A DNA stretch of 63,871 nt from Lytechinus pictus (Eukaryota). Below are positions 29,701 through 60,587 of this stretch, one piece after another. Positions within the stretch are counted from its first letter, which is position 1, and each line of letters opens with the position of its first letter. The notes beneath the pieces were generated by a model. It ran no database searches. It worked only from the letters and a program-made list of their open reading frames with translations, and was not told the origin of the DNA. The position numbers and the translations under genes were made by a program. The DNA lies in contig NC_087252.1 in the NCBI RefSeq assembly GCF_037042905.1, positions 13,950,001 through 14,013,871 on the forward strand, in the 5' to 3' direction.

Positions 29701-32700
29701 TGTAAGCTGGTGACGACGTTTTCACTTTGGTTGCCATTCTTTCGATACGCTCCTGAAAAATTTGTTCAAGAAGAAAGTAGTGTAGATGTGTAAAGCGCAC
29801 TGTTCAAAGGCATGGCACCAGCCTAGCAACAGTTGTCTTGTAAACAAGCTACAAATATCTACAACAAATCTACAATTTAAGTGAACAACCAGAAAGAATT
29901 ACACTAAGTAAAAGTTGCAAGTATCTGCTAGTATACAATTTTACATCATTCATCAGAAGTCATAACTACATCATATATCCTGATGGAACCTATGGGCCTC
30001 CCGCTTTGGCTGTTCCGTTCACCATTCCTACGTTTCGAAGGCTCTTACATTAGACGGTAAACGGAACATGCAAACCTTCAGTCAAGGTATTCGTTTATTT
30101 TTACCTGACAAAACAGCAAGAGCCTTCTCTCTTCCAAGAACAGGACGAACCGCATCAGCCAGTGCGTTCCGGTGATTGAAAGACTCGAGATGGAACATAG
30201 ATCTCCAATCCTTGAGCAGAGCAACGATATCATCATGGTCAAATGCCACTCCAAGCTTTTGCCGTAATTCATCACGCTCTTGGGATGTTGGTACTGGCCC
30301 ATACCCCAAGGCGAACATGTCGGATAAAGAAATCGAATGTCCTGTTTGAAAAATATATACATATTTAAACTTGAGACCTGGAGGGTGTTTCATGAAAGTT
30401 TTCAGTACAGACTAAATTGTCAGTGCTGACTATTTCAGTGAAATCCTCGGTTTTGATTGGCTGAGAGGCACAAGAATCTGACTGTTACTATCAATGGAAA
30501 CTGTCGGAGAAAGACAACATGTCAATGCTGACAACTTTCATGAAACAGTCCCTACACTGTAAAACGTAGTGTTTAGCTTTTGAACACTTTCTTAAACACT
30601 TATCTGTAATACTTTATAAACACATAAACACGTTTATTCATTATTGATAAACACTATGATGAACACTTTCATAAACACTTAAACACGTTCATAAACACAC
30701 CACCAGAACACGTTCATAAACACTTAAACACGTTTATAAACACTTCACCAGAACACTTTCATAAACACTTAAACACGTTCATAAACACTTCACCAGAACA
30801 CTTTAATGAACACCACATCTAAACACATGTTTAGATTATAAACATCATGTTTAATCTTTAAACACGTCAGTGTATTTATTTTATAAATGGTTTGACACAT
30901 TTACTGTTAAACACTTTTTTGTAACAGTTTGTAAACGTTTAAACATGTTTATGACTTTAAAAATAAACACTTCTGGTATAAAGCGTTTACAATACAAGAA
31001 ATGTAAATCTGAAACAGAACATTCCAAAATTGTGAAATCCTTGCAAGCTTTATAAACAGATTATATATACATGGTGTGCCAAAACAAAAACTACTTGATC
31101 AAAACTAATTGGCTAATTTTCTTTATGAGTTGATATAATTCTTCACACTTGAATCATGAAAGAAAAAAAAAACCAGATATAAATGGAATATTGAGAAACA
31201 TTAAGGGCACTGCAGGGATGTGAGGTCCACTGTAGGGAAATTTACTATTCAAAATTTTCCTGAGTCGTAAAGTAAAATTTTCTTGAATCTCAGAATTGCT
31301 ATTGATAGCTCAATGTCGAGATGAATTATAAGTCAACCAACAAAGTTCAAGGCCCATATACTTGTCAATATATTTTGCTTTAGCAACAGTCAGAAGATGC
31401 CGTGTCATAAACTTTTCCAACTGTTGTAATTCTCCATGTACTGTAAATATCATGGCAATAGCTGTAATGCTGTATGCTGATTGGTTGCCTCCATGGAAGT
31501 TACAATAATCGGGAATGTTACAACAATGTCTGGTAAATTTTTATGAAGTTCTCATATTGTGTAACATATAAAATAATTGTAGAGCGTTAGATCAATTTGT
31601 TTGCTTAAGCCCTATATGAATATTCCATATTGTATTGTACCGTATTGAAATAAATCATTTAAAGCAAAATGATTCCAATCATGCATCACACAAGTTATAT
31701 TACCTTGTTCTTGAATACATGCAAATAACATTTCATTTGATAATATTAATGAAATGGGGGAACAAATTATATATACAAGGGTATTGCAAGAATTTGCATA
31801 GTGAGAACATGTGAAAGTCAAAATATGGAAAATCACAATTCAAAATCATTCTAGTCACCGACGTGCATCACACAGTATATATTACCTTGTTCTTGAAAAC
31901 ATGAAACTTAAATTTCATTTGATAATATTAATGAAATGGGGAAAAACATTTCAATGTACAAGGGCATTGCAAGGATTAGCATAATGAAAACATTTGAAAG
32001 CCAAAATATGGAAAATCACAATTCAAAATTTTCCTTAATGTCTCTGAGCAACACAGTAACTGATAAAAAAACTAGTGCTTTTTTCATTAAATTTGAATTT
32101 TGCCAATGGAAGCATCATTTGCTCCATTTAATTTATTCAGAACAACACTGATCTCTCCATGGCTTTTCTTGCATGTGACTTGAAAACATTATACTGGGAA
32201 TTATCAAAATTTACTCTTGGTACCCTCCAATGAGATGTGTACAAGAGTTTAAAGTTTGCACTTGATTACACTTAGTGCTTGCCCCTTCTAAATTTTACAC
32301 TATAGTTTGGACCAAGCATTTTGCATACTGGAGAGAACAATGTAGAAAGAACAACTTCAATACTCCTAGAAATTAAATGAGACTTTTGATTATGTGCACA
32401 TAATACTTTCACTTGCTAATAATGAACATGGGCTTAAATCTTAGTAAGGTTTTGACTTGACCAATTGATTAATCACACTATAAAATACATGTACATTCAA
32501 TACTGACAATGTAAATCTTTAAAATGCAATATGAATTAGGCATGAAATGTAAAATGCACACAAGGATTTTTACAAAGGGACCATGAAGTGTCAACGGATT
32601 ATAAGCGCTTGTCACACTACAGCGGTTCATTCGTTCCATTTCCACCCCCCCCCCCAAACCCATTCCTTTACTGCCGATGTTCGGTGGTTTTCGTCAACAG

Positions 32701-35700
32701 ATGGACATGTGCATGCAAAAAACTGTAACTTTCTGTAAAACAGAAACCACCGAACGTTGCTGGAAAAGGAAAAACAAAAACACTGCCATCATCTGTGATA
32801 TAATTCTTTTCATCTGATGAAAAAAATTCTAACAGATTTACGTCTGTGGAAAAAAAAACACGAAAAGGGAACAAACAAATGCACACAGAATGAAGCTGGG
32901 TGACTGTAAAGTGTACATGTGTTTTTAAAAAAGCGATCAAATGAGAAGAATGTGGGGGGGCGTGACTAGTATCTTTTTATTTACAAGGTTGTGCCTCAGC
33001 TACCCTCCAAATTGCAGTCTGAAGAACTGCCTGCAAGGGCAAAATATAGGGTCTTGAAATGATTGCATAAATGATTGTCTTTCAGATTGTGTGTGTGTGT
33101 GCATATGTGTGGTAGGTGTGTGTTTTGGGTGTTTTTCGGAGGTTGACCGAGGCACAACCTTGTCAGTCACAAAAGATCCGAGTGCCCCCCCCCCCCCCCA
33201 CATGACTTGGGACCATTTCCTACCAATTCCTTATTTTCAGGAAGATTCCACACAAATCCTTTATACTGATTAGATGGTAAAATATAGGAATAATTTTCTT
33301 TCACTAGCTGCGAATACATCTTCAGATATTTGAGGTTGAAGACATATTATGCAGCGCTAAGCTGCATGAATGCCTTGGTGAGATTTGTAACTTTGCAATC
33401 AATTGTGACCTCATCAGATACGATGAAACATCCAGTCACATCTTCCTCTCAGGTATTACAAAGATGACAAGTTAGTGTGTGATAAACATGTACATTATGC
33501 CCACATATGTAGTAACACCCTCCCACAAATGTAGCAATCTTAATTCTCCCACCAATGTAGTAAACTGACAAAAAAAATTGCTTCCAACAAATGTAGCAGT
33601 TCTTTAATAGTCAAATTTCTCTCACAAATGTAGTAATATTACATGTGTGGGAGAAATTTGACTAAGAATCACATCATTTGTGGGATGCACGTATACTATG
33701 TTTATGAGCACTACAGGGCCTAGCCTAGCTGGTTTGGTTACTGTTTGACAGGTATCTGGACAGAATCCTTATTTGCCCCAATATTAGAAAACCATCGTCT
33801 GGCAGATTCTATGTGGTGAACTAGGAGTGAGAGCAAATAATTGAAGGGATTTTCCCATAGGGTAATGTATTATGGGGGGGGGGGGGTAAGCGGCACTTAG
33901 AAATGAAAGTCTATGGAGGGTTTTCTTGTTTTTTTCCATAGCATATATTTGAATATGCTCATTTCGCAATAAAAAGCATGATTTTTTTTGGCCTTTGAAC
34001 ATCGAGAATCACCTGCGGTCAAAGATGTATATCTAAGGAAATAAAGCTGTCCGATATAGCGGCGAACTTTCGAAATAGCAATTATTTCCCGTTTATCAGT
34101 GGCTGAGGGCACTTGCCAGATACCATTTCAGAATCATTATGACCGAAAACCAAAAATCATAAAATCAGTGTATTCAAATGTAAGCTATAGAAAAATAGAT
34201 GCAAGGATCCGGCAAAGACTGATGTGTTATACAGTGCCACTTCAAAATACCCCAGGCTGTCTAAATCTACTGCATCCCCAACTGCTGTCGGAGGAGAACC
34301 TCAAAGTTTCTATACTTGGAACTCTTTTGGCCGTTGTATGGTTCCTTGAGCACATAGCTCTGCACTAGACCCAGCAACTGCGAATACATCTTCGGATATT
34401 CGAGGTTGAAAACGTAGTATGCAGCGATAAGCTGCATGAATGCCTTGGTGAGATTTGTAACTTTGCAATCAATTGTGACCTCATCAGATACGATGAAACA
34501 TCCAGTCACATCTTCCTCTCCGGTAACAAAGATGACCAGTCGAGGCGGCTCTTTCTTGCCACTTGTCATGTGGGCTTCTACGTCCTCATCCGGAACTTCC
34601 TGTAATTATGGATAGAGAGATTAAAAAACAAACAAAAAGTCTCAAATTCTTAACAAACTGACTTGAAGAATGTTTGATAGCCAAGAATGAAATCTGAATA
34701 TATCAGTGAACTGTCTATTATCCAATGAATAATCGATCATGCATTTTAGGTTTGTTCCATTTACCTTAACCTAATTTTGATACCAACTGAGACGATGGGG
34801 AAAATGGGGGGTATAGATATCATCAAAAGTGTGCAACATATGCTTGTCAAAACTACCCAGTAAGTCCACCAAGTTTGCGTTTATGTACTCAAATCCAGTT
34901 CAAGTTCAAGATGCTTTGTCATTTGGACCTGAATGGAAAAAAATACATGCATACTTTGAGATTTCGATACTTCTGAATAATAATTAATGGACCTGTTTGA
35001 GATAGTCAAACTATTAACTTGGCTTTCACCTCGTCTCACTTATTTGATCCCACCTTGTTCATAGATTATACCAAGAAACCCAATAATCAGTTGTTTATCA
35101 CATAGAAAATAGAAAACTACTGATGTTGTAAGAATATTAAGATAAGAAATCTGCCACATCATCTTAAAAGATAAAAGTAATTATTTTTGTGATATTCCAC
35201 ATGAGTGTATAGCCTTTGATCTTGTGACCTAAAAATTTAATGAGGTCATTACCTCTCCAGTAAACATGCATATTCAGTGTTGTTTAACCCTAACAAAGGT
35301 GATCAGTAAATTCACATCCACAAAAATGAGAATAAACAGAATGATACACGAACCAACACCAATGGCCAGCTGGCTACAGGGTGCAGGAGCATGTTTAATT
35401 TCTGTAATGGGGAAAAATATGGGGAAAGAAATCCACACGTACCTTTTTGATTGAGATGACAGCTTCAGTTTTACTCCCTTTTCCCCTGTCAAATGCCGTC
35501 TTTTTTTCGATGTACTGGATAAGGGGAAGCAATTCCAGTGGTCCCTGCAGTAGATTGAAACAATAATAGAATTATAATGCTTATGACATATAGAATATGA
35601 TTCTAAACAATAACACTACCTGCATGCAGGAGACACTACAACACCACTAGACAATGGTAAAGATGGGTTGACTGCATGTGTTGTGAGTCAAACGTGTTTG

Positions 35701-35731
<31 letters not shown>

Positions 35732-38700
35732 AGAGAAAACATCATGTTCTTGTGCCATTTCCCATTTTTAAACACAATTTGTTCAAAGCTGGGTTCTATT
35801 TTTTTTTTATATCGTTATAGTTTGCAGCCCAATTTCTTTCTGATTCCATGGATCCCCCTCCCCCCCCCCCCAAAAAAAAAAAAAAAAGAAGAGAGAGAGA
35901 GGAGAAAGAAATAACACTGAGTACAATTTTTAACTCTTTGAACTGGACTCCAACAAGATTCGAACTCACAACTCACAATCTTCAACTTGTTTGGCAGACA
36001 TTCTACATAACAACTAGTTGGGGGAAAAAGACATAAAAACGAGCTCCATGTGGCACCACCTGAGGAAGGCAATCAATGCATTTGACACAATTTTCCTAAA
36101 GTCATTTATTTACATCATTACAGTGAAGTCCCCCCCCCCCCCCCATTTTCTTTTTAACCCCAAAGATGGCTTCCACCAAGTTTGGTTGAGATCTACCCAC
36201 ATGTTCTGGAGAAGATGAAAATATAAAATGGTTTTTGGACAATGCACTACGGATGATAAATGGGATGTGATAGCAATACCTCACATGAATCTTTGACTCA
36301 TGTGAGGTTTATAAAACAAATCTACAAGGTATTACATTCCAACTGAAACCTCAACATTAATGCCATACCAAAATATACCTGGAGTCTGTTGCATACAAAT
36401 TAAATTTGAAAACAAACGATTTATGCAGTGACTTTTGACATAAATTATACATAAGGTTTTATGCAACAGGCCTCATCATACACAAAATAAATGGGCTTAC
36501 CTCTTTGCTGCCAGTACTCTTGAGTTCTTCAATGGCTCTCATGAACTTTTGAAGACAAGATTCCAGTTCATCTAATGAGTCACGTCCTCTTAAGAGCTGA
36601 AAGTCATGGAGGATCTAAAATAAAAAAGAAAGAAAACAACAAAATTTATGTTATGTGAACATCTACACAACCTAATTGCTACCTTTGATTAGAGAATTGA
36701 TTCACTTCCACATGGTATGGAGATTAATGCCATGACAAAATAATGTTAGGTTGGCCAAATTACAAAAAAATAACAAGTTCTGAAATGGAAAAAAGTGCCC
36801 CTAGCCAGTCAGGCCAGGTATCTGTAGATAATTGCTATTAATTAATGATAACAATTATTCACATCTTTGAAACTACAGGGTTCTCACAAAAAAGAAACGT
36901 AGGCATGACTGAAATAAACCATAAGTAAAACGAAAATACCCATATTTGCACAAAATTATTAATTTTAAAGATGCATTATGAACAGCAATTGTGGCTTGCA
37001 TGTACTATATATTACCTTTTTATTTTGTTTCCATTACTTTTTAATGTGAATAACGTTTTGTGTGGAAAATTACAAAGAATTCACATCGAGTATCCCCCGA
37101 AAAAAAAATGCTCACTTAGCCATCAAAGGATGACTTTTATTTTCAGCAATGCAAATGACGTCGAAACTTGCAAGAGTACTGAAGGCCAGCTGCAGCTAAT
37201 TACCTTTGTCATAATGCATAAATACATGTAATCCTCAAGAACAAACTTAAGGCCATTTCCCATGATTACTTTCTTCAGGTATACTAGTCTTACCATTCTT
37301 CCATCACTGTAGCATGGGATTCGCTTCAATATGGGCTCTACTTGGGCATCAGGAAGAGACATTATCCATTTTTGATTCGTTGCAAATGTCTTTTCCAGCA
37401 GAAGACGGATATGTCCCAAGCACCTTTTTTCTGCAGGCTTGGTCCACTCTTTTGACAGTTCCTTGAGACACTGATCTGCACTGTCATCTGTCACAGTGTT
37501 TTCTGAAAGAGAGATAGAGTAGGCTAATAATATCATTATTTTTTATTATGTAGTCCTTTTCATGAATGATACTCAGATCAAAGTACTTTAATACTGGGGG
37601 GATGAAAAGGAAAAAGAAAAAAAATGCCGAACATTTCTCTGTAACACTAAAAAAGCCGGGTCTTTTGGACCCATCTCACAGCCGAGGGGAGGCAGAATCC
37701 CCCCCCCCCCCCCCCCCCACCAAGATCTCTTGAACAGGGCAAGCAGTCTTAACATAATTTCCTATTTTAGACCCTTAACAGGGATTTTAATATCTTGCAT
37801 GGTAATGTACACCATATATGAGGATTGCCAATGCTATCCTGTTTTTTGATACCCTAAACACGGTATGTGCATTACATGTATGCGCCAGTGATGAAAAAGA
37901 TATCATTTTCACACAGTTTTGTGTTTGCTGATGATGTACACTGCTCAATGTGGAGGGGAGAGGGATTGAGAGGAATAAAACCTACCTTGAGCCATTTGAG
38001 CACATCGCGCTCGTTTTGCCATTCCCGCCTGATCATTCACATTGGTTCTCTTTACCTTTCCTTGATCTGGTTCTGTTTTTGGATTCGTCTTCTTTTTCTG
38101 TTGCCATCTGATGTGCCGAATTTTCTGACTGAGACATTTTGTGAAGAAGGACTATATCATAAGAGAAATTGAAGAAAAACAAGTGGGTAAAGATATCTTA
38201 TTGGGTATTATTTACAGGTCATGAAAGGGGGCCTACACCAATTTCAGTCAAATTTATGACTTGAAGGTTATTGTAGTAATTGAAATGACGACCATGGTCG
38301 TTGTTCCTCGGTCTAAAAATCCTGAGAATTCAATTATCTGATATGTGAACGCTGATTTAGGCTTAACAATAATTTTTAATAATTGAGTAACCCAATTATT
38401 GCCCCAAAATGGAAGCTTTGGGGAAAGGTGTTGTAAAAATGCCTTGAACGCCATATACAATTTTGTTTTAGGTCACAAAATAAAGTTTATATCATTTTCT
38501 TTGAATTATGGAATTGTCATTTTTCATTTTCTTGTGTATATGGGAAAAATTCTTACAGATGTTTAAAAAAAAATCAGTATCTTTGAAGATAAAATTTCTA
38601 CCCCGTGGCCACAACTCATCATTACCTTCAAGTTCTGTGTTAAATTTCATTGTTCGTGTTACCTCTCTAAACTGTACTCTAACTTCAGCACTCACACTGA

Positions 38701-41700
38701 AAATATCTGAATGTGATAGTGCAGACATTGTTGGCAAGTTTAGACAGCTAATACCGACACCAAAGGGTAGGATCTCGATACCAGCCCAGCTCCAAATTTG
38801 GCTTCATTAGCCATAACCCATAAGTAGGTTGGAGCTGTAACCTTGGAAAATGGAGCTGAGCTGGTATCGAGATCATACATACAAATAGCCTCAAATCGCC
38901 CAATGCAGGCATGGATACATACCCACTGGTGTTCCCCTTCACGTCGTATTGTAGGGTACTGCGAGTATATTTTCTGGCCAATCTTGGCATACTCGGTGGA
39001 GGAGTTGATGGTTGGAAATTCTGTAAGATAGTAATTGGCAGCTTCTGAGATCAGTTCTTTCCAGATCACATACTCCTTGCCAATCTCTAGGTGTCGTAGT
39101 ACTCTTTGGCTGAAAGGTGGTAGTGGCGTTCCTGCAGTAATCCGCCGTTCAGTGTCATTAGCATTTTGTGGACTTTGTTCAGTTTCTTGGAGTCTGAAGT
39201 TATCGCCATCTCCTCCAGCTGCTGCACCTGTCAAATGTCGATTTTCAACTTTTTGCTCTGCTTCACCCCTCAATTCCCAGTGCTCTCCCTCCTCTAAAAC
39301 CATCAAGGTAGAATTGCTACATTCCAGCAGAACCTCGTCGTCGTCGATTTCAGTACCATCCTCCTCCAGCACGATTCCCTCAATTCTTGCCATCCCAAGC
39401 TTCACTTTAGCTATGGACACAAATTAAAGAAAATTCACTTGAAATATTAACTATCGTAAATTGCTTTTGCCATGTTTAAATGCTCTCATTATCATACCAT
39501 TAATGTCCATAATATTGATCACATAACTTGTGTGTTTCATAAAAACTGAGGTAAAACATCATTTCAAATGGAACTAGAAATATAGCCGAAGGTGATTAAT
39601 ACCACCATCAAACAATCTAGTATCACCTTACCTCACTTTTTTGGCCATAATATGCTGTTACTATGGCAATGCACCTTTCACCGCTGTTGATATGTGTTTT
39701 GCACATCTACACCTTAAGACCTATATTTGTGCTAAAGTTATCACCAAAAAAAAATGAAACCGTAACATGGAACATAAAACATATGCACATGACATAATTC
39801 ATGCCTGGAACTGAACCATCACTGGTGGACTGGTGGTTATCAACAAGAAAAAATACCTTTTTCGCAGAGTTCTTCATATGTGTTCGCCACAGCCATCTTT
39901 TTTTCAAGGCGGTTGGCCCTCCACAGCTTGAATACTGGCATGCTGCAGTTATACAGTGTAATGTTCTAAATCTGCTTGATTAGCCTCTAATGGCAGACAG
40001 TAGTTCTGTGCAGAATACAAAAGAAATCCTGTATTTACATATGTTTACAAACAGACTGATTTTCAATCCAAATTTCATTAATAATACATAGACTCATAGT
40101 GTAAATCCAAATGTGCATAAGAATTTGAGCAGCGATATTATATCAATTTCATCAGTTTTCCTTCCACATGATACTAATAAATTACTATCATAATATTCTA
40201 CAAGATTATTTTTTTCCTGTTGAATTTGATTTTGTTGATCTATTATGATTCTAATTATAGAGAGGGTGCATGTTCAAAGTCACCCCAAGGTGGGATGAGT
40301 GGTGACCTTGAACAACCTGCAAAAATGGACCCATGCTTTAATACTTCACACTTGTAGACGGGTCAATATATGGTTTGACCCGGAACAAATTGCAACAAAT
40401 GATTTTTCAACGGTATTTTGTACTATTTGACCTCAGGAATAACATACTAAAAATCTACCAAAATCCGCATCCGGGAAAGTGGTTATTTTCAAGATGGCGT
40501 CCAAGATGGCCGTTATTCACTAAAAATGGATATAACTCACTCATTATCCACCATAGAATCCTATTTGGATTCATATTCCATGGTCCAATGGGTAAAAGAA
40601 TTTATTTATACAAGTTAGAGTGAATATTAGCACTCCAGGGTACCAGGAAAATCCAAGATGGCGCCCAAAATTGCTGCCCTAGTCTAAAAAATCAACAATT
40701 CATCTATTCCTTACTTAAGTGGCTTTAATTTGGTTTCCATTCGATTGTTTTAATGATGAAGTAGTACGTCGGGACAATTTTCAAGGACAGCTAGTGGTCT
40801 GGTGTGTCGGAAAATCAAAGATGGCTTCCAAAAATTGAGTTTAAAATGGCTGTTAATCCTTAAAATGGACATAGCTCATATCACATCCACCTGAGAGATA
40901 TGATTTTGGTGTCTAGACCATGGTCAAATAATACATTGGGACAAGTTACAAGGACAGTCAGTGGTCCGGTATGTTCAAAAATACAAAATGGCTTCCAAAA
41001 ATGTAAAAAGAGCAAAAGAGTAAAAAATGCTGTTGCTACTTAAAAAAAAAACAACATAGTTTGTTCAATATCCGGGAATATGATTTTTGTGCCTATATCA
41101 TGGTTAAATGGGTCAAATAATAAATTGGGGTAGGTTACAAGGACGATTGGTGGTCACGTATGTCCAAAAGTCCACGGTGGCTTAAAAAATAGTATCAATT
41201 AGCCGCGATGGTATTCAAAAATTGACATATTTCATGTTTTATTCGTCAAGGGCATATGATTTTGTTGCCTATATCGTGGTTTCAAAGGCAGAAAATTAGT
41301 TACAAGGACAGTAAGTGGTCCAGTATGTCGAAAAGCTTCCAAAATCGGATTCTAAAATGACTGTTGTTACTTTAAAAATGGACATAGTTCATTTAAAATC
41401 CACCTAGGAGTAATGATTTCGGTGTCCACACTATGGTTTCATGAGTAAAATAATACGTTTGGACTGGTTACATTGGTATGCAGTTGTCCAGTTTGCCTAA
41501 AACACAAGAGGGTTTTTAAAAAAAGGAATCTAAAACGACTCATATCATTCAATAGTGGTCAGAGTTCTACAATATTCATCTGCAAGAAATAATGTTGGTG
41601 TCCAAATTGTGGTATGAAGGGTCAAAAAGTACATTCGGACAAGTAAGAAGGATGGTTAGTACCCCATTTTGTCAAATAATCCATGATGGATTCTAAGATT

Positions 41701-44700
41701 TCATTAAAATGAGTGCTGTAACCAACTCATGAAACTATATGATAACTTGTCCCCATGCATTTAAGTGTAGGCATCAAGATTATTTCTAACAGGTAGACAT
41801 TTTATGTAACAGTAGTCACTTTAGAACCCATTTTTTAAAGCAAACTTGGATTTTAAGGCAAAATGGATAGCTGCATATCATGGTAACCAGTCCCAAAGTA
41901 TTGTTTGACTCTTGAAACCCTAGTGTAGACACCAAAATAATATCCCCAAGGTGTATTTATAATGTTCTACATCCACTTTTAAGTAACAGCAGTCATTTAA
42001 GACCCCCATTTTAAAATCCATCTTTGATTTTTGGACATACCTGACACCTGACTGCCCTTTCAACTTAACCCAATGTATTGCTTGACCCGGTAAACTCTAG
42101 TATAGACAGCAAAATCATACCTCTATGGTGTATTTATAATAAACTATGCATACTTTTAAACAGCAACAGTCAATTTACACTCCATTTTTAAAGTAATCTT
42201 GGATTTTTTAACATACAGACAACTGACTGGTCTTGTAACTTACCTAGTGTATTACTTGACCCTTTTAAACCATGCTTTTAACACCAAACTCATATTCCCC
42301 AGACAGATATTAAACAAACTATGTCCTTATATAAGTAACATCAGACATTTTTTACTCCATTTTTGGGAAGCCATCTTGTAATTTTGGACATACTAGACCA
42401 CTGACTGCCATTGTCTTGTCCTAATATATAATTTGACCCTTGAAATCATAGTTTAGACACCGAAATCATATCTCACAGGCGGATTTAAAACGAGCTCTGC
42501 CACTTTACGTATCAACAGCCATTTTAGAATCAAGTTTTGGAAGCCATATTGGATTTTTGGTCATACCAGACTAATGCCTGGCCTTAAAACATGTCCTAAT
42601 GTATTATTTTGGCCCTTAAACCAGTGGTTTAGACACCAAAATTGCATCTCCCATGCCGATATGAAATAAGCTATGTCCGCTTTATGCATCATCAGCAACA
42701 TATTTTTAAAGAATAATTTTTGGACGCCATCTTCGATTTTTGGACATATCAGACCATTGACTGTCCTTGTAACTTATCCTAATATATTATTTGACCATTG
42801 AAACCAGTGGTTTGGACATCAAAAACAAATATCCCAGGCCATAATGAAATGAACTATGTCCGCTTTAAGTATTAGCAGCCATTTCAGAATCAATTTTTAG
42901 AATTCATCGAGGATTTTTGCACATGCCAGCCCACTGACTTTCCTTGTAACTTGTCCCAATGTATTATTTGACCCATTTAACCCATGTATAGACAAAAAAA
43001 AAACAACACATTTCTGGACATTGAGCAAACTATGTCGTTTTTTTTAAGTAGCAACAGCAATTTTCGACTCCATTTTTGGAAGCCATCTTGGATTTTTTAA
43101 CATACTGGACCACTGACTGTCCTTGTAACTTGTCCCAATGTCTTATGTCCCAATGTCTTGACCATTGAAATCATGGTCTAGACACCAAAATCCTTATGTC
43201 CCAGGCGGATATGAAATGAACTATGTCCATTTTAATTATCAACAGCCATTTTAAACTCCATTTTTGGAAGCCATCTTGGATTTTTGGACACACCAGACCA
43301 CTGGCTGTCCATGTAGCTTGTTTCAATGTACTATTTCACCCAAAACCATTGAATAAAAAACAAACTTAGATGAATTTTGGATTTTCAGCCCATGGCAGCC
43401 ATTTTGGGCGCCATCTTGGATTTTCCTGGTACCCTGGAGGGCTTATAATTCTTTCTTGCCTAAATCAATTTTTGTACCACCAGACCATGGAATATGGACC
43501 GAAATAGGATTCTAGGGTGGATAATGTGTCATTTGTATCGATTTTCAGTGAATGGCGGCCATCTTGGACGCCATCTTGAAAATAACCCCTTTCCCGGATG
43601 CGGATTTTGGTAGATTTTTAGTATGTTATTCCTGAGGTCAAATAGTACAAAATACCGTTGAAAAATCATTTGTTGCAATTAGTTCCGGGTAAGGCTATTT
43701 TTGGTCGTATATTGACCCGTCTATTGAGTGTATCTATCAAAACTGTACACGTGAAAGAGTGTACCATAGACCGTATTTTAGAAACAAAATAACTGAGCTT
43801 CTAGCGGATTATAAAACTTTATTTTCACAAATCCAGTGTTCAAAGTCACCCCGTCATGGTGACTTTAACACAAAAATATTATACTGATTGAATGAAATTA
43901 TGCCTTTGTAGTTATTTGATCTCGACCTACATTGTATTAATAAACATTTACCCCTAATTTGTACATATCGGCCTTACTGTCTTATACTGTATGTTTAGAA
44001 ATGAAATGAAATTTAATAATAAAGCTAAGCAAAACAAAATGCTGCTCATTTTGTCAGCAACTTCTCAAAGGCTTTCACAAGTGTAAGTATACTTGTTCAT
44101 GACACATATGTCACCATGATGTTTATGCACGCTCAGAGGCCATTTGGAAAATAGCTTTGCATATGGTACAATCCGGTACTCACGAGTTGGTTCAAGGATA
44201 TATGCCAAGACATGGGTGTCAAAGCATTGAATATGCATGCACTTCACTATAAACATTGTATTTCCTTCAAAGAGGAAAATGCCCTCAACAAGTCCGAACT
44301 GTGGCATGTCATCTTGGTAAGCCAAAACCAGACAGCAACCACATCTATAGTCACGACCCAAAATCACAACATCGTTTGTCCCGTACACACGGAAGTTCTC
44401 GTCCATTTCATGACCAAGGATATCAGTCATGGATGCAACAAGGTGAGGAAATGCTTCTTGGAAGACAACAGTATCTCCTTCCTTGACGATGTCACCTGCA
44501 TATAGGAAGGACTCTGATCTTTTACCATTTGTGGCACCATGTTGTTTGTAACACATGTACTTTTGGTGTTTAGTGCTTATGCTCAAAGGCAAATTTTTGA
44601 AGCATCTCCATTTCTTTGTCTTGAAAAAGCCATGTTTGGCTTCAAAGCGCATACACCAGTGGTTCCTCAAGGGACCATACTGCACAAGCTGTTCCGGCAA

Positions 44701-47700
44701 ATGCAAGCAATAGTGCATTTTTGGAATGACCCGTGCCCTTGGATAGAGAGACACAAATTTTGTGTGATGTTCATACGTCAATTGTCTTAGAAGTGCTGCA
44801 GTAGTCAACATACAAGTTGGGGATGTGGCAAGAAGGGTCATTTGAACAAGCCTGAGAAAATTGAGCCATTTTTCATTCATCTTTGGTACTTTATCAGCAA
44901 CAACCAGAGGAAGGATAGTAATAAGGGTCATCATTGCTGCAGATGTCTGTTTGATTCTGCCCTTATCCTTGAGGGAATTAGCATCAATTATTTCTGGACG
45001 GGCTGCACACTCCAAATAGGTGTATGGGAAAGAAAGAATTTTGAAATTGAGCCACTTCAAGGTGAAATACTTGGACTCTTTAACAAAATCTGTAAGCAAA
45101 AGCTTGAGCTCATATGGGACTAAGCCTTCAAGCAAAATGTGCATGGGGTCTTGTACAAAACCTGAGCAAAGTTTGAAATCAGGAATTTCAGACAGACAGC
45201 TTCTGGTGTTCACACCCCATTCCTTGCTCCAGTATGTTTTTGCTTCTTTAGATAGGGGTGATTCTAGGGCATCACATCTCCTTTTATGTTCTTCCTCATC
45301 CCTCTTCCTAAAGTTGATATCGACAAACTCTCTTTGCATTTCAACTTGTGTAGCCTCACATTCTCTGCATGCCTTGTGGGCAAATCCAACACCTTCTTTG
45401 AAGCCAGCAAGCCATTGTGCTGCAAGGGTGTCACATGGCACAATGACAAGATTTCCTTCAATGAGCACTTGCTCACCATTTATTTCAACATTGATTCCTC
45501 CACTTGACAATGACCTCACTGTTGTGATGAATTCATCCAACAAAGATTGAGGCCCATACTTCCTAATATCCTTTGCTTTAGCAACACCCAAAAGTTGTAT
45601 GGCATGTAGTCCTGATCTCAATTCTGGGGGAATGTTTGCAAGAGTGAAGTAAAACATACTCAGTTTGTGTTTCTTTGTGTGAGAGCCAATTGGGTTGACA
45701 ATTTCAATGTCATCTGTGTTGAGGATTATTTGAAGGGCTTTTGGGTTTCTGCTGAATAAGTCATTAGACTTGACGTAATTTCCATCTCCAATGTCACACA
45801 TGAAACCAGAAGAACTTGCATGCCCATTGTTTACATACTTCCATATTTCTGGCACATGAAGCAAATTAACAATGCTCTCCAAAAAAGGAATCTTATACGC
45901 TGTGACATCTTTCTTCACAAGTCTGCCCTTAACAGTAACATATCGTTCACCAAGTTTAACTGCAGCTGGTGGGATGTACGACAATTCTTTCTTGTAAAAT
46001 GAGTCTCTGGACCTCTTTGTTGTTAAATCATGCAAAGGTGTTGACGAGTTGGGTCTCTTGATGGAGTTTACCACTTCTGCAGAAACATTTGCATTTGATA
46101 ACATGTTGCAAATTTGTGCATTATTTTTGGATAACTGTTCATAAACCACATTAACAACAGACTCAATAATCTTATTCACTGATTTTTCAGATAGATTATG
46201 TTCACATTCCAGAGCTAGTGTAAATGAAGCAGCATTCAATTTCTCAACACTAGTCTGTGACATTCTCACATCTTGATTTTCTGCAGCATGCACATCAACA
46301 CCATCATTCTCCCCATCATCAGGAACGTCCTCATCTCTTTCGATACCACCATTATCAATTACATCCTTGTGCTTTCGACAAACATGAGCTTTGAATGCTC
46401 CCCATGATTTGCTTGAATACAAACAATCAGGGACACTGCAACAAACTAAAAAATTTGGATCATGCTGATGTAAACGAACCACATGAGAAACGAATTTATC
46501 ATATGAATTGCAGGCAAAGCAGCACATATAACATTTGAAATTCTGCTCATCACCTGGACCAACCATTTCAGCCATTTTGCATGATGTAGAAAATGGAGCA
46601 GTCAATTTAAATTGTGACAGTGTGAGTGCAACAAGCAACATTAATAATTAATATTTTATCAGCCATGAACGTACCTGAGCTAAGAATAAATATTGCCACT
46701 TCAGCAACAAAACTTAGACCTAGACCTAGGCTAGGCCTATCTCCACACTCTTCCAAATTCAAACAATATTCCAAGAAAGTCAGACTCAAAGTCAACTCAA
46801 ACCCATTTTCAGTGGCAGTGATTCAATAAATTAAGAGTCTTTAACTAAGACTTTAAAGTTTTAATAGACCGATTAGACTTAATTGCTACATGATGTATGT
46901 ACTTTAGTTCAGATAGACGTGTGCTTAATGAGACTAAGCTAAGTTAATTCCAATTCCTGAGAAGTTTCAGAAGCACCCCAGCGGGGCCCAGGCTATAGAC
47001 TAGTCTATAGACTGCGAAGACTATCTAACGTTAGAGACTAGAGACTAGAGTAAGACCAAGCAAAAGACCTAGTCCGAGACCCGAATACGGAATAGGCCTA
47101 GACCAAGTTACTGATTAGAGTCATAGAGATCGATCTAACTTGCATGTACTGAGGCCGAGATCTGTAAAGACTAATTAGCCTACTAAGGCTAAGCCACTAA
47201 CAGTTAGAACATCTCTAAGCTAGCGTTAGCTCTACTGAAATAACTACTCTCACTGGCCCGCGGCGCGGCTGACACGTAGACCTATAATGATGTAGATCTA
47301 CTGTACACTGACAGCTCAAAACTCAATACATTTATTGCTTCTCTTTACGGTTTAACATTTTAAGAATATTCGTAAAAATTATGAGTCCATGTACTATTGG
47401 TAATATTTTTGACTTGTTGATCAAATTCATAAACTTACATTAAAAGATTGACAGGATTTCCCGCAGATTACACCAGGGCCCCGTTGCATAAAGCTTTTGC
47501 CAGACTTATTTTTGCCATAGTTTTTCTATGGCAAAAACCTTAGTTTTTTGCCAGAGTTTCAAATTCGGTCAAAATTTCATGGCAAAAAAACTCTGGCAAA
47601 CTTTTGCCAGAGTTTTTTAAGTTGCCAGAGTTTTTTAAGATTGAATAAACTTGAACGAGGATGAACGCCGATATCAGCCGATATCGCGATCGGTATCTGC

Positions 47701-50700
47701 GGCTGCTGAAAAAATCATGGAGACTCCATATAACGGTAAGCTTGATATTTTTTAAATGAAATGTGTTGATATTTGCTATTTTTATCATTATAAGTCGATT
47801 AATTAGTTGCAAAAATATCTGTGTATTGTTTTGAATCCGTGCTCGCACCGTGAAAGTGAGATTCACGATTTTTTTACACGTTTGAATCGTCCCATTTTTG
47901 TGTCGCAAGCGCCTGCGGGGTCTGCCTCTCGGCCATGTCTATTGCCGCCGGAGCTTCGGCATGGTGATGTGACCGCGCTGGTCGCACTTGGTGCGCCAAC
48001 AGCTGAAACCACCAACTGCATCGACACGTTTGGAAAGCTTATTTATCGTATTTCTCTTGCTATGATCACACATTCTACATTATGATTAGTATCAGTAAAT
48101 GAAAATTTCATGTTGTTCAAATCAATTTTTCATGTTAGAATTGAATTGAATGCAAAGCCAAAGTTGCAAACTTTGGACCACCGTCACTGTCGGTCGTTAC
48201 CAAGTCAGACAAGTTGAATTGAAGTTGGTTAGATTCTAGACCTACAACAACAGTTAGATCGAATTTTCAGATCTAACTTTAGGCATAGAATCAACATTCT
48301 TGATCTAAGTTAACTTTTTCTGAAGAAGTTGAGACTTCAGTCAATCAGTTTGAGGGCTCCACCGTGAAGCCCCTGACTGAATGCCTGAGGCTGAGTGAGG
48401 TACATGTTCTATTATTAGTATTACTATTTACGTAGGCCCTTAAAAAAGGTGCGTAGCTGTAGAGCTAGAGGTAGTAGAGCTAGATTAATGGTTGGCGCAT
48501 AGACTCTCTTCTACCAGGTGCAGATCTAGAGCCTGTGTCTTTACTTAGTACAGTACTACAGGGCGCGAATTGGCACTAGGGCCTACAGTGCAGTGCTGCA
48601 ATCCAACAATTTTGACAACTCTGAATGGTGGCTTTAATTTCTCCCTTAAAAATTTGAAATAAAATAGGGGGGGAGGCAGTCGTACCAATTGACCCCCTTT
48701 CCCTGGATCTGCTATAGGTGACCCCACATGAAATTGCGACATCATGATCATGAACAGTACTTAGCGTAATGTGCCAAAAATTTTGAGGGGGCCTGACACT
48801 GACAATGGCGTAGGGGGCAAATCTTAAAAACTGAGCAATCCAAATTTTTTACACTTTTTTAAATACAAAAAAAAAAAAATGTACGCCAGTGAACGTGAAT
48901 CTATACAGTGGCTAGAGATTAAAAATTGGGCTCAATTTAAAGCTTGTTATAATCCAACACTCTGCAATTTATTTCAATTAATTGAAATTAATGATCTGAT
49001 GACCACTAAAGTAAAAATCTTGAAAATCCTTCATAAAAAAATTCTTGCAGAGAAACAAATCATATATATAATGTTATTTTGGGGCTGAATGGAGACTATG
49101 GGATTGTTGTATTAGTATTAACATGCATTACTATGTTTTTTAAGGGGCTAGAATTTTGATTTTGGTCTCAATTGCATATAACATCATTGATTATTTGTTT
49201 AAGATAGAAAATAAAAAATGATTTAAAAATTGCAGTTTTGGAATTTGGATATTCTAAGTTCATATAAATTTGCATATTATGTTGAAGAAATGAACAAATC
49301 CCTTTAGGTTATTTATCATCTGAAAGGGAATTTCAATGATCAATCCAAATATTTTTTTCCAGTTTGTACTGAGCTAATTTTTTCTGTTAAGTTTGAATCA
49401 CTGTAATAAGTCCAACAATTGGAATCAACCATCAAAATGTCCTATCCTAGTAATGGTTTAATTCACCGGCACAAACATATTAGTATATATTCATTTGATA
49501 ATTTATACTGAAAGTAATCTCAATGCAAATATTTGTGTGACTTTATCTAGTCTTAATTTGTGACTCTCTAATAGGATTATTTATTTTCTCATTCAATATC
49601 TAACAGCTTAAATAGTTGAGGTATATACACTGGAGCAACTCAAGTGCATGTGTGACTTTTTGAGAAGAAACCACACAAGGCTGTTGGTTAGCAATCACCA
49701 TGTAAAAGGGTAAGATATACAGCTTAATTTCAAATTAGCCAAAATTCTAATTGCTACCATTTTAAGTATTTATAGACAGGCTTATATTTTATGTTGGTAA
49801 TCTCGATGCAAAGTTTCTCAAAGTGAAAATAATATTTATGAAGAAGAAGTCATTACTGCCTGATAATGTCGAACATAAAGTAGTTATAAAATACAATTTT
49901 TAAAAAAGGTTTCGTCTTCTTGAATAGAAAGAAAAAAAATTGTTTCAGGCATATTTGAAATGAGTAAGAATCCTCATGTTGATTATTTAATTTATACAAC
50001 CCCCCCTCCCCCCCCCAAAAAAAAATAGAAAATGTACCTAATCTCACCTGGCTATGCTAGTGATTGTGTAGACCTGAATCAATAATAGTTAAGTTCATTT
50101 AATTACCTCTTGCAATTCTTTGAAAATTATTATTGATTTTGATTTTTTTTGTCTTTGATATGTCCATTGGAAATGATGAAATCTTATTTTCTTACAATTA
50201 CAAGTTTTGATTTAGATTTTCATGGAATAAAACTGAAAGAGTACAACACATCTTTCTTATAAATTCCTGATTTGAACTCTAGTTACATTAATAGATTGCA
50301 ATTTTAAATTTTGATAACTTACAAAGTAGATAAATAATATTAATTATATGCCATGAAATGAGATTTTTGTCAAATAAATTTAGACAATCTTGACAAAGTG
50401 CAGAGTGTCTTTTCAATTAATATATAGCATATACCTATTTTATGATTTGTTTGTGTTTGCATTTTAAATAAAGGTTTGCAGAAACCAGACAGAGAGCCTG
50501 TGTGGAGATGCTATTGGCTGCCCAGGTCGGACTGCCTCCAACCTGAGGCGGTCTTGGAGTGATCTAACAAAAGAGTGAATGATTATGCTAGGAATCAGAC
50601 AAAGACTGGTATGTATTTTTATTTATAAGAGTAAAGAATATATTTTATATGCATCAAGAAGAATTAAAGATCACTATCTCTTAAATTTTATTTTGTTGTA

Positions 50701-53700
50701 ATTGTCATGCAACTAATCCAAAATATCTATAATTTTTTTACATCCACCCATCAGAGGTGGGTCCGAGGACAGGTTTTGGGGTTGTCTGGCCATCCTGTCT
50801 TTCTTAAATTATTCTGATAAGTAAAGAACTGTTTGATTTTAAACTTTGTCCAAGAATGCATGTAGGATTGATTATACTTTAATTATTTTGAGGGTATCAA
50901 GGTCACCTGAATATACATCGTTCCTGTGATAAATAAAGAACCCTTTGATGGTTCAACTTCAACTTGGCAAATATATATTTGGGAGTGACAATGATCAGGT
51001 TAGGTCAAATGTAAAAATTAACCAGAGATGGTTGGCAAATTTGTGTGTTTAATATTTTTATCTTTTGATGTTGCAATGGCGGATGCATAAATTTCTAAAC
51101 TTACAAATGTACCCCCATGATCCTCAACGGGTTAAGGATTGGTGTCACGGCTAAATACTAATTAAAAAACAAGTATTATTCTTTGTCTATTTCAGTCATT
51201 CAGTAATTAAATTGCTGCATTTGTGGAAAACTTCATAACTGAACAGTTCTGTGTGTAGTGACTTCAAAATTTGTTATTGACAGATTCTTCTTTGGCCTAG
51301 ATCCCCTGTGTTTGTGGGGGGGGGGGGTAGGCACAGATCTGGGGGGGGGGTACACCCCCCAAAAAATTGTTGAAAGTACTGTGTATATATGCAAGTGATG
51401 ACCAGTTTTTTGGGGGTTGTCAACATTTTCTGGACAAAAGTGCCCCTCCTTTTGGAAATTCCTGGATCTGCGCCTGGGGTGAGGCGAGTCAAAATCACCC
51501 TTCATAGTTTTTTTTTAAGATCCTCCTGCTGTGATCCCTGTTTGCATGGAGAACATTTATAATTGTGGCATTACTGCACTTTGTTAAATCTTTAGGTGGT
51601 AAAGTGAAGCCAAATATGGAGATTGTGCTGGCAGCCATGAGGGACAAGGCCAAGCATTGGGTCCATGGCCAGGAGACCGAGACTGGGGCATCTGAGCAAC
51701 TGGTTAGTTTTACATAAAAGATTTATCACACAAAGTCATAACAAAGTTGAAAATATATATACCTAAGGATCATTTCATTAATTTTGCTATATTCTTTCAT
51801 TCATTTTCTCGAGAAATGAGCATAATTTCGATTGAAATTTGTACAAGATGGTTCTCCCTATAGAAATAGGTAAACTGGTTTACAATGAAAAATTCAGATT
51901 TTTTAAAAGCTAGAATAATTATCCCTAACCCATAGAATTCCTATCATTCATTTTGAATTAATTAAATCTGAATTTTAACGGGGATAGTTCTTCTTTCCTC
52001 ATGAAAATTTCTGCAAGGAATAGTAAGTAGCTTCAACTACTATTGCCAGATTGAGGGATTTTTGTTCAGAGTTGGTAAATGATTTAAGATTTCCAAAATG
52101 AAATAAAAATGTTGAATCATAGTAAGTCAATTTAAAAAAAATCAATGCGGAATGGTTTGAAGATGTAATTAAAGTTAAGTCAAAAATTATTTTCTTGATG
52201 TACAGCTTTCACATAAGGCAGCCTGCTTCTGGACATGGGGAAGCCAGAGGAGGAAAAGGAGGTTGAGGCGGAACCTCAAGCTGTTCCCGAGGCACCATTG
52301 ACATCCAGGGTAGATGGGGTCTACCGGTAGTTGATTGTGTAGGACACCAAGATGACACCCAGCAAAAGAGAAGAGAAGGTGCTCTTCCTGTTATGACCAG
52401 CACACCAAGTACCAGGAGCATGGATCTGCAGCAAGTTCAGCAGGAGACGCTCAGAATGCAGCAAGCTATGCTGCAAACATTTAAAATCATCCATGTTGAT
52501 TTTTGTAATTATCCACAATTGTTTGCAGCAGTTTGTTAATGGAAATCAGTAGTAACATTAAACAATGCAACTTTCTCTGCATTTTTTTTTTACTGGAAAC
52601 CTGTTGAATATTGTTTTAGAAAATGAAGTAAATCACCTTGAACTTTGGAAATTTCCGAAAGCATATATTTTAGCAAGTAATATGAAAATGAGATATACCA
52701 TGGTCACATTTGGTGGCCTTACGGCTAGTCGAAATCAGTCGTTTTATGTATTACTATACAAACCACCTACATGAAGCTGGTACAAGGATGAGTAAAATGG
52801 CTGATTTTGACTCGCCATAATGCCACCGGCTGGCAAATGTGACCTAGACATAAGTTGTTGATGTCATTGTCTCATAATTTTGAACAAAAAAATGACAAAG
52901 ACTACATTCTTCAGGATTGAGAAAGTTAAACTTGAACTTTATTCTCATCTCAGTAGATAGAAGATAATGTTATTCATTCAATACTGCGGTAGAATTTGAA
53001 CAAATGCCTTGCAATGCAAAATAAAAATTTAGGTTCTGAAATCTTGATGGGAATCCCTGTGCAAGAACAGTATTAAAGTTTTTCAATTAAATTCAAAGTA
53101 TTATAATGGTTCATAACGAGTTCTTAATAAGTGATTGCGAATAAAATTATTTTAAATGTATAATTCAATGAGAAATAAATTGTTTAAAAGAGGATAAATT
53201 GCGAGAGAAGAGATAGAAAAAGAAAGAAAGTATTAAGAAAGAGACGTCTGAGTTGTGTGATCGTAATTTAATTGAGAAAAGAAAACTGTTCTTAATAAGT
53301 GATAAGTTTTTCCCTATTCTCGCTTGCAAATAAAATTATTTTAAATGTATAATTCTATGAGAAATAAATTGTTTAAAAGAGGATAAATTGCGAGAGAAAG
53401 AGATAGAAAAAGAATGAAAGTATTAAGAAAGAGACATCTGAGTTGTGTGATCGTAACTTAATTGAGAGAAGAAAACTGTTCTTAAGTGATAAGTGTTCCC
53501 CATTCTCAATTGCAAATTAAATTATTTTAAATATATAATTCAGAATTAAATTGTTTAAAATGGAGAAAGGGAGAGAGAAGAGGAAGAAAAAGAAAGGAGA
53601 ATTATTAAGAAAGAGATGTATGATTTGTGTGACTGATATTTTAATTGACAGTAGAAAAAAAATGATTTAACCTTTAGGTTGGCCTCCGACTATAAAAATA

Positions 53701-56700
53701 CAATTGCACCATCCCTGTTGGCCCATAAAGGAAAATATTATTGATTGTTACATAAAATATTACCAAGCAAAACATTAAGTCTTATTCGCCCCCCCCTCCC
53801 CCCCATATAATTGCCACACCTTCAACACTATGGATCTATGTTTTATGAAATTGCTCATTTGGATATTTTGGAAATATTTTTAACATTGCCAAGAAAGCAA
53901 CAACAACAAAAAAGAACCTTTTTGAAATATTATGGACAAATGTGATTCAAAATCTTTTCCTCCACTTTTTCTAACAATATTATAATGTTTTGAATAATGG
54001 CATTGAGGAGGGGTGGTGTGATTGAATTGATGAATTTAATTATTTGATCCTTGTCAAATAATTTGGATATACATATTTTCATCCAATGTAAATATAATGT
54101 GTAGGCCTAGGCTGTTTACCCCCCCCCCCCCCTCTTCCAGAATAATCCCCCTCTTGCTATCTCTCTTTCTCTCTCTCATTGTATGTTAGATGTTCGGGGA
54201 CAGTTTTGTCCCATCATTGAGGTTATCAATAATTTAGTTTTATTCCTGGCTTTTATAAAGCAACCACAAAGAAAAAATAAAACATCTCTCAGTTGTCCCC
54301 GTTCAGGGATTTTCGATGATGGCTAGTTTTTCTTACTTTATTACATGTACTATGTAGACACAAGTGTGAAATTAAAAAAGGAATCCACACAAATTTCGGG
54401 TCACTGTACTATATAGTGTAAGTTTTGATAAATATATCAGTCGGATATTTCATTTCTCCTTTTGTTTACGTGTTCGATCGTCGTCTGTCTTGGATTGAAG
54501 CAAGTCGAGCGACGGGGAAGAAAAATATAAGTTAGGTCTGTTTTGAGTGAAAGATAGACCTCCTCCGGCATGCCCCTCCTTCTCAATCATCACCCAGTTT
54601 TTATGACCTGTTAAAGAAAAATGAGACTGCCAAGGTGAGAAATTAAGATGTCCAATGAGCGCGTCCTAATCTTACTTTGAAGTTCCAACTTATTTTTGCA
54701 AGTGTGGGACTAGGCCGTATTGACTGCTATTCAAGTTTTCCTCGTAAAATTGAACTTGCAGTACAAGTCTGTTCAATCGTTAAAATAAAGTTAGCTCACA
54801 TACTTCTGAGTATTTCAGTTGATTTAGGGTAGTATTTCTTGGTATGTCTTATAGAACTTGTAAATATTTGGATTGACAAAGATGGTTAAATGGTAAAAAA
54901 CAGCAAAAAAAGAGGCGGCTTAGGAGGTACAACTGTACACCAACAACACATCGTCGCATATCGCATAGAGGTTGAACCAGCGGCCAACTCGCCAGCCGGA
55001 GGCTCTGACAATAAAGGTCACGGTAGCAAAGAAAAAGAGCAGACTGCCTAAGTTCAAGTTCAACTTTAAAGCCTTATGTTTTGAGTAATTTAAAGGGTTT
55101 AGTCCAACTGCATCGCTCTATTCACAGCATAACTTTTCAAAAACACTATAATCATTAAGATTTACTTAAACTAGAACTAGATTCTATCTTAGAAGATTTT
55201 TATTATTGAGCTGTCACAGGGTTGATAAATTTAAAAAAAATTAAACCACAACCTATTATTCCCCCCACTTCACTTAAAATCTAGATCTTCCTAGGCCCTA
55301 TTTTTACTAAATTAAATGAAATTTTCTGTAATTACCTTATTGCGTAGCCTATACAAGGCTTATGTCACCCTTCTAATTATTCTTGAAGCCGTAGACAGGT
55401 GAATACTGTATATGGTAGCCTACTTGGGACATATCCTGAGCAGCTGCCTTGAAATAGTTTTGCCGGAGTTTTTAGGACTTTGCCGTTGGTACAGGAGCTA
55501 CGGCAAAACCCCACTTGATTTGCCGGAGTTTTTTAAAAGTTTTGCCGTAAAAAACTCTGGCAAAGTTTTATGCAATGGAAAACTCCGGCAATTTTTTTTT
55601 TGCCGTAGTTTCCTGATTTTTTGCCGTAAAAAACTCCGGCAAAAGTTTTATGCAACGGGGCCCAGAACTCCAGCCAGCACATTTAGACAGTCGATGTGGC
55701 GTTAAGGAATTGCACCAACGCGCATGCGTTGTGCGCCCCCAAAAACGATCACGCGATCGATCATAACCAAGTGTTTATGCTAGAAGTGTTTATTTGACTG
55801 ATGTAATAAACATTATCGCGTTAAACGTAAAATTTCACAAAATTAATTGTTATAAATAAAACACGTTATAGATTAAAAGCATCATAGTCATATAATAACC
55901 TGTATTTGTGTATAACATAAAAGCTTTCAATGAATTTTGGAATTTGGAAACATGCTTATTTATCAATGATCACGCCGCCGATAAATAAACACCTAAACGG
56001 CACCTAAACCCCTAAACGTATGAGAAAACTATACCCGCATTCCGTAAACACATAACGTGTAATTATAAACGCAAGCCTAAACACACCAGTGACATAATAA
56101 ACACGTCATGTGTTCTGTCTTTTTACAGTGTAGGTCCCGGTGGTTTGCCCATAAATATGTTGTTCATGTTTAAAAGAATGTGGGCCCGATATGTTCCAAT
56201 GGCCTTCATGGTCGATTGCATATGGGTCTCATATGCTTCCTGGCTGCAGATGCCTTAGAATCCCAGGTGGTTTGTACATTGGGCCCATGTGTCAAAGAAT
56301 ATTGGCATCTGGGTCACACATTGTCTTTCTACCTTGGTATTTTGAAGAAAACATCTTTGCAAGAACGTTCCTTCGTATCGCTTGATTATTATTTGAATTT
56401 GAAGGTAACTTTATTTTATATGGCCAATTGTACAAGAAAACATTATACAAAAATAATATATCTAAATGCTCAAGGAAATATAGAAGAGGCATGACATAAC
56501 CATTCATCTAAATTAAATAATACAACGATTTGAAGACATTAAAACCACATTCAAAAAGGTAAAATATTATAGGACCTGCGTAAAAAGCAGAACTGAATCG
56601 GCAGCATCCAGACAAATATCCAGATTTAAATCTAAACGAAAAATAAATCGATTAACTAAAGAAATTGCAAAACATAGAATTGTGGGTATCTCATTCATCA

Positions 56701-60570: not shown

Positions 60571-60587
60571 TTGACCCGGACGTCGAT

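Follow-up and report, generated by a model that had tools for sequence, protein, structure and literature searches.

A CIDE-N domain at the head of a putative accessory gene of an EnSpm/CACTA-type transposon in Lytechinus pictus

Why would a transposon carry a CIDE-N domain? The question is raised by a 63,871-nucleotide stretch of the genome of the sea urchin Lytechinus pictus (NCBI RefSeq assembly GCF_037042905.1, contig NC_087252.1, positions 13,950,001 to 14,013,871; hereafter the window, in whose own numbering coordinates are given). There a seven-exon gene on the minus strand (39941..34267) lies with the open reading frame (ORF) of a transposase between the inverted ends of an EnSpm/CACTA-type element. 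Based on our analysis, the gene moves with the element, its protein begins with a true CIDE-N domain, and very probably it is a transposon-borne accessory gene. The explanation we favor as a whole, which we consider rather probable, is that it serves an autonomous EnSpm/CACTA (CMC) transposon as its second, accessory gene and that its CIDE-N domain would associate with itself.

The gene model is well defined. As a preliminary description of this DNA had proposed, seven exons separated by introns that are all GT..AG join into an uninterrupted frame: the coding sequence is 1497 nt long, with 498 codons and zero internal stops. The spliced 498-aa translation is identical residue for residue to the RefSeq/UniRef entry P0209, 'uncharacterized protein LOC135155065 [Lytechinus pictus]'; the NCBI pipeline thus arrived at the same gene model. 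All seven exons are also collinear with full-length homologues of other phyla, the alignment crossing every junction. Exon 1 (39857..39941) starts with the ATG at 39941 and holds codons 1-28 plus 1 nt, while exon 2 (38923..39410) encodes the second half of CIDE-N, a disordered linker and the start of a conserved helical domain. A basic helix and a lysine-rich disordered linker follow in exon 3 (37986..38151). Exons 4 (37294..37502), 5 (36501..36614) and 6 (35443..35544) were placed by splice model and homologue alignment, the joint of exon 6 to exon 7 being seen once, in a contig, and exon 7 (34267..34599) encodes the YYVFNLEYP region before closing with the stop codon at 34267-34269. Part of exon 7 has a degenerate duplicate, also on the minus strand (33306..33472), that is 94% identical to 34378-34540, contains stops and is found in all copies of the element.

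By Pfam score and predicted fold, the N-terminal head of the accessory protein is a true CIDE-N domain. The full protein matches Pfam CIDE-N (PF02017) with 53 bits (E 3.7e-14), against a curated cut-off of 23.5 bits, and residues 4-74 cover positions 4-76 of the 76 in the profile. The coding span of these residues (39274..39932, minus strand) is interrupted by intron 1 (39411-39856). Because this phase-1 intron after codon 28 divides the domain, CIDE-N is not visible in any single ORF, which is how the preliminary description had accounted for its absence from a list of ORFs. Taken singly, exon 1 matches profile positions 4-28 with 14 bits, and exon 2 matches positions 41-76, collinear with exon 1, with 30.4 bits. 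In the AlphaFold2 model the predicted local distance difference test (pLDDT) is about 90 across residues 1-70, and the head superposes on the CIDE domains of FSP27, DREP2 and DREP3 with template modeling (TM) scores of 0.83-0.91 and root-mean-square deviations (rmsd) of 1.1-1.6 Å (Foldseek: 4mac_B, TM 0.91 at rmsd 1.1; 4d2k, TM 0.85; 7v6e, TM 0.89). Among solved sequences, the Drosophila DREP2 CIDE domain is closest (E 2.4e-8). Basic residues K5, R8, R11, K14 and K15 and an acidic run, E44-E54 (EEDGTEIDDDE), both recur in homologues. Accordingly, the earlier assignment of the first ~75 residues to CIDE-N is borne out, and residues for the basic patch and the acidic EDG patch that were claimed with it are present. 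A predicted complex of two copies of residues 1-80 scored 0.00, and the method returned no verdict. In a six-frame search of the genome the sole other CIDE-N match was a single-exon, host-type one of 30.8 bits at G000:C17:295783-295983, presumably a DFF or CIDE homologue; the element's domain has 10/25 identities with it in the only aligned stretch.

That the gene moves with the element is evident from the genome assembly, which holds four copies at different loci on three contigs. Copy A, in the window on the minus strand, bears two nested foreign insertions (40355-43723 and 47477-55670). Copy C (G000:C16:29044733-29058724) is the plain 14.0-kb form, with ends 100% identical to those of A and unrelated flanks. 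Copy B (C8, near 16.96 Mb) is without the first 186 bp of the left end, and copy D (C3) is older, 92-98% identical, with only the last 135 transposase codons left. Three of the four are at least 99% identical, and collinear blastn blocks join A to each of B, C and D; the ends are common to the copies and the flanks differ. The 498-aa ORF and every splice site are intact in 4/4 copies, the protein differing from that of copy A by 1 residue in B, 1 in C and 20 in D. Between copies A and D the ratio of nonsynonymous to synonymous divergence (dN/dS) of the accessory coding sequence is 0.35, with a dS of 0.049 that is close to intron divergence, indicating that the coding sequence is under constraint. 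The transposase of copy C is matched in two frames, with a frameshift near codon 765. Recent mobility in L. pictus, a laboratory model sea urchin, is suggested by the near-identical copies, of which two retain an unbroken transposase ORF.

The element itself spans 30555..56130 (minus strand) and is 25.6 kb long because of its two nested insertions. Its termini form a perfect 10-bp inverted repeat, CACTGTAAAA, present on the plus strand at the left end (30555..30564) with TA just before it, and on the minus strand at the right end (56121..56130, reading TTTTACAGTG on the plus strand) with TA just after it. The repeat begins with CACTG, the fifth base being G and not A, so that of the CACTA transposon first described the mobile EnSpm/CACTA-type element adjoining a transposase stands, and the CACTA termini do not. 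TA occurs at both ends of the complete copies A and C and at the right end of B; this constant flank is compatible alike with a target-site duplication, a preference for TA targets, or two extra bases of the inverted repeat. Animal CACTA elements are reported to have 2-bp flanking repeats (PMC1636069). As a candidate for a longer target duplication, the 5-bp GTCCC that lies near both flanks of copy A was rejected, since it is non-adjacent to the ends and absent from copy C.

Both subterminal regions carry short-motif arrays. On the left, a (T)AAACAC array (30568..30970, plus strand) has 18 motifs in 600 bp, with 45-bp tandem units at 30661-30813, and on the right (55771..56104, minus strand) there are 7 AAACAC/GTGTTT motifs in 600 bp, in both orientations. 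The corresponding densities are 30 per kb at the left end and 11.7 per kb at the right end, versus 1.25 per kb in the window. The motif TAAACACTT has 11 matches versus 1.5 expected, 10/11 of them within the two element ends. Of the nested insertions, the one at 40355..43723 is a foldback element of 3.4 kb with TAGACGGGTCAATATA inverted ends, TTG flanks, long inverted arms (40378-40585 versus 43483-43690, 93%) and about six internal 183-bp tandem repeat units. The other, at 47477..55670, is 8.2 kb long, with GGCCCCGTTGCATAAA inverted ends, CAG flanks, subterminal TTGCCAGAGTTTT-type repeats and no long ORF. Both are absent from copies B and C, and are foreign to the plain element.

Upstream of the accessory gene, on the same strand, lies a single-exon ORF of 858 aa (46641-44065) with N-terminal C2H2-like zinc fingers. 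The 858-aa ORF itself has no Pfam match on a direct scan. It has 72 strong homologues, and alignment shows invariant acidic and Cys/His columns. Among 28 aligned homologues, Pfam finds DUF4218 in 6, Transposase_21 in 4 and Plavaka in 3, and homologues at 25-36% identity to the ORF carry PF02992, PF13960 or PF18759. Transposase_21, DUF4218 and Plavaka are families of CACTA/EnSpm transposases. The ORF may accordingly be placed in EnSpm/CACTA (CMC), a putative membership by chained homology only. More than 50 further matches to this transposase occur in the L. pictus genome, at 25-39% identity.

Is the accessory gene a recent passenger, or has it long belonged to the element? Pairs of the two genes in other animals argue for the latter. 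In the starfish Acanthaster planci, a CIDE-N gene (P0218; 648 aa, 40% identical over its whole length) follows about 0.8 kb downstream of a 54% identical transposase (P0002) on the same strand. The order is the same in Patiria miniata, where the transposase is 52% identical and a first exon with CIDE-N precedes the annotated start, and in the snail Littorina saxatilis, where the transposase is 40% and the accessory protein 29% identical and CIDE-N is annotated. One ENA contig likewise encodes a transposase and then a CIDE-N gene. These four finds bear on the search for CIDE-N genes beside EnSpm transposases that the preliminary description had proposed; the homologue in Lingula, which has none within 10 kb upstream, is weighed below. 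The start codon is conserved in different phyla, as is the intron after about codon 28, which is found at the paired loci and in Lingula. Given that the pair recurs in starfish, snail and the ENA contig, the accessory gene is an old part of the element and was not captured; it has remained, under purifying selection, beside transposases of this lineage in echinoderms and a mollusc. Further accessory homologues are found in a brachiopod and in spiders, a link to a transposase being seen in neither, and some members of the family may be host genes, or stranded or domesticated copies. As a separate observation, the last two exons of the A. planci CIDE-N gene are tandemly duplicated (L012:16173-18613), which we liken to the degenerate last-exon duplicate at 33306-33472 in the L. 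pictus element.

The body of the protein points to a second kinship. AlphaFold2 models the whole accessory protein with a mean pLDDT of 81.8 and with disorder confined to linkers 78-115 and 214-248. The layout is CIDE-N (1-77), a disordered linker, a small helical domain (about 120-248) and a helix-and-sheet body (250-498). The helical domain ends in a long basic helix and a lysine-rich linker, and its lysine-rich disordered stretch (residues 209-236) resembles a nuclear localization signal. The majority of exhaustive HMMER hits align to residues 120-192 of this small domain, and many are short gene fragments. CIDE-N is at or near the N-terminus in 8/10 longer homologues scanned, above the Pfam cut-off in 7; a Pfam scan found no CIDE-N in the spider relatives. 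Among AlphaFold models of Swiss-Prot, Foldseek ranks human and mouse SAMD3 highest for the whole model, residues 68-489 aligning to 74-513 of the human protein (Q8N6K7; E 5.4e-10) at a sequence identity of only 13-15%. In AFDB, a separate model of residues 116-498 (pLDDT 89.1) finds, at E 1e-8 to 1e-14, clusters labeled SAMD3, 'SAM domain-containing protein' and 'CIDE-N domain-containing protein'; many of those named SAMD3 or 'SAM domain-containing' match this core at E 1e-8 to 1e-11. A language-model atlas agrees with AFDB. On these models, residues 116-498 are placed in one fold family with vertebrate SAMD3 minus its SAM domain, a kinship that the preliminary description had put forward for the C-terminal region and that the structure search upholds.

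The accessory protein has no SAM domain, CIDE-N being the only Pfam match on the full protein. That one core family bears SAM or CIDE-N at the same N-terminal place fits a swapped module. The swap-in head put forward earlier is consistent with this placement in the relatives, a fit in which the polymerizing role proposed for it has no part. In L. pictus, weak collinear hits of the accessory profile lie downstream of two further transposases (L016 and L018) on the same strand, with single weaker hits near two others, and no SAM-domain exons were found in the ORFs tried around three other EnSpm transposase families. Just after a 31%-identical EnSpm transposase, at L016:9161-9637 (G000:C20), is a 159-aa ORF with a weak, non-significant match to the Crinkler N-terminal ubiquitin-like domain (E 0.1), followed on the same strand by weak hits of the SAMD3-like core profile; this may be a second gene of the same kind with yet a different head. 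The BTB head of a Parasteatoda tepidariorum homologue (P0214) was dropped as a third swapped module; its gene model spans 140 kb and is probably chimeric. More generally, the models that fuse a BTB domain (P0214) or a COR domain (P0222, Lytechinus variegatus) to pieces of the transposon protein are probably annotation chimeras from transposon copies inside host genes.

What, then, might CIDE-N do on the element? TnpA of maize En/Spm, a CACTA element, binds the subterminal repeats and works with the TnpD transposase. By analogy, CIDE-N may be the self-association module of an accessory protein in a TnpA-like role, to which we give about even chances. CIDE domains have been reported to form helical filaments by head-to-tail assembly (PMC8647176, PMC6292858), and here the domain would mediate self-association of the head-to-tail type, a part that SAM would play in the sister families. 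The protein would multimerize at the element, for example on the AAACAC arrays of both ends or on the transposase, and the multimer would assemble or regulate the transposition complex. A broader proposal, which we put forward tentatively and regard as somewhat doubtful, is that a SAMD3-like core with a swappable self-association head, CIDE-N in this lineage and SAM in others, is the widespread, ancient second gene of metazoan EnSpm elements, that vertebrate SAMD3 is a domesticated descendant, and that CIDE-N filaments organize the transposition complex on the subterminal arrays, a role beyond cell death and lipid droplets.

Several observations weigh against the explanation we favor. Transcription is barely supported. 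Reads of four runs were mapped to 34200-40000, and the two true RNA-seq runs yielded very few reads, with depth near zero over the accessory gene. One contig skips from 34598 to 35442, which is intron 6, but has 27 nt on its short side versus a 31-nt bar and comes from a run that is RNA only by guess; further pieces of these runs lie within introns or are unspliced. Of the junctions for which RNA-seq had been proposed as a check, one joint was therefore seen, below the length bar. Searches of solved structures with core 116-498 (Foldseek, VIA-align) gave a best Z of 5.4, which is noise for helical models, and no recognizable DNA-binding fold; rows for homeodomain-like, HMG and TnsB structures at Z 4.3-4.7 are within that noise and were not used as support for DNA binding. 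Sequence kinship with plant TnpA, of the Transposase_24 kind, was not detected, Pfam giving CIDE-N only. The homologue in Lingula lies without a transposase within 10 kb upstream. Self-association, DNA binding and an effect on transposition are themselves attributed to the accessory protein by analogy.

The Lingula locus, together with the RefSeq entry of the protein as an ordinary uncharacterized gene, would suit a host gene, or a captured fragment of one, that merely lies inside or beside the transposon. This we consider very improbable, as the gene sits between the inverted ends in 4/4 copies, the unrelated flanks of A, B and C exclude segmental duplication, in two starfish and the snail the gene is still paired with transposases of 40-54% identity, and different phyla share the start codon and the intron after codon ~28. 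A transposon gene could also be aimed at the host. In such a case its CIDE-N would bind that of host DFF40/CAD or DFF45/ICAD as a decoy or hijacker, blunting apoptotic DNA cleavage after transposition breaks or recruiting the nuclease. Heterotypic pairing of CIDE-N domains via oppositely charged faces is known (PMC5730196), the residues of both faces are present, and the genome has at least one host-type CIDE-N exon apart from the element (G000:C17:295783-295983). However, the similarity to that exon is low, and sister families have on the same core, at the same position, a SAM domain, which cannot address DFF. The SAM head thus favors a generic association role, and makes the decoy less likely; we regard it as improbable.

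Alternatively, the accessory protein may be a regulator and not a builder, controlling expression or silencing of the element, with CIDE-N recruiting a host partner instead of polymerizing. TnpA also acts so at the Spm promoter (background of PMC1636069), and the resemblance of residues 209-236 to a nuclear localization signal and the failure of the core searches to recognize a DNA-binding fold would both agree with regulation. The idea is compatible with our explanation rather than exclusive of it; as a replacement for it, we find a mainly regulatory role unlikely. We retain the second, accessory gene with a self-associating CIDE-N domain as the best explanation.

Other features of the window lie outside the element. 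On the minus strand at 10781-14204, adjacent ORFs of 790 and 344 aa resemble, by eye, the endonuclease/reverse transcriptase of a non-long-terminal-repeat retrotransposon split by one stop or frameshift. ORFs with immunoglobulin-like patterns at 17493-19189 (plus strand) are possibly exons of a host gene harboring these repeats. A long CT/GA-rich low-complexity tract at 59500-60750 yields spurious ORFs of 300-380 aa in several frames, and the 60-62 kb bin has strong GC and AT skew.

If our explanation is true, animal CACTA/EnSpm elements gain a conserved and recognizable accessory gene, and CIDE-N, until now associated with apoptotic DNA fragmentation and lipid-droplet fusion, enters a mobile-element setting. 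SAMD3, a vertebrate gene that is not known to have an assigned function, would be linked to a transposon protein family, with a suggested origin and a testable molecular activity. The pairing had been presented at first as undescribed; in the literature, with Repbase and Dfam outside the scope, no paper was found that links CIDE-N or SAMD3 to EnSpm/CACTA, although the accessory protein and its relatives are already in RefSeq and UniProt as uncharacterized CIDE-N proteins.

How does the element compare with known systems? In fold and Pfam family its CIDE-N resembles the domains of DREP2, DREP3, CIDE-A/B and FSP27 (PDB 4d2k, 7v6e, 2eel, 1d4b, 4mac), and it has in common with them the acidic EDGT motif and the basic N-terminal strand. 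Whereas known CIDE-N domains are joined to a nuclease, the ICAD body or a CIDE-C lipid-transfer domain, that of the element is joined to a SAMD3-like core. The large conserved body that follows the N-terminal SAM of SAMD3 is matched by this core in structure only; the head of SAMD3 is SAM, that of the accessory protein CIDE-N, and SAMD3 is a single host gene while the accessory gene travels on a mobile element. SmTRC1 of Schistosoma mansoni is likewise an animal CMC-type element that encodes proteins beyond the transposase (PMC1636069), and it has 2-bp flanking repeats, to which the TA flanks in L. pictus would correspond if they are a target-site duplication. Its termini are CCC rather than CACTG, and the SmTRC accessory proteins were reported to have no detectable relatives in other animals, the 2006 study having found none shared between species (PMC1636069), whereas the L. 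pictus accessory gene is conserved with its transposase in echinoderms and a mollusc. Similarity to maize En/Spm lies in the CAC-type inverted ends, in the short-motif arrays of both subterminal regions and in a second element protein encoded 3' of the transposase on the same strand. TnpA, however, is an alternative splice form, while the L. pictus accessory seems to be a gene apart that starts from an ATG of its own, and the two proteins are analogues by position only, no kinship in sequence or domains being detected between them. Both the two-protein design of En/Spm and the view that animal CACTA elements should have an analogue of TnpA are set out in PMC1636069, and the pairing of a transposase with a CIDE-N accessory gene in L. 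pictus is a variant within that known two-gene design.

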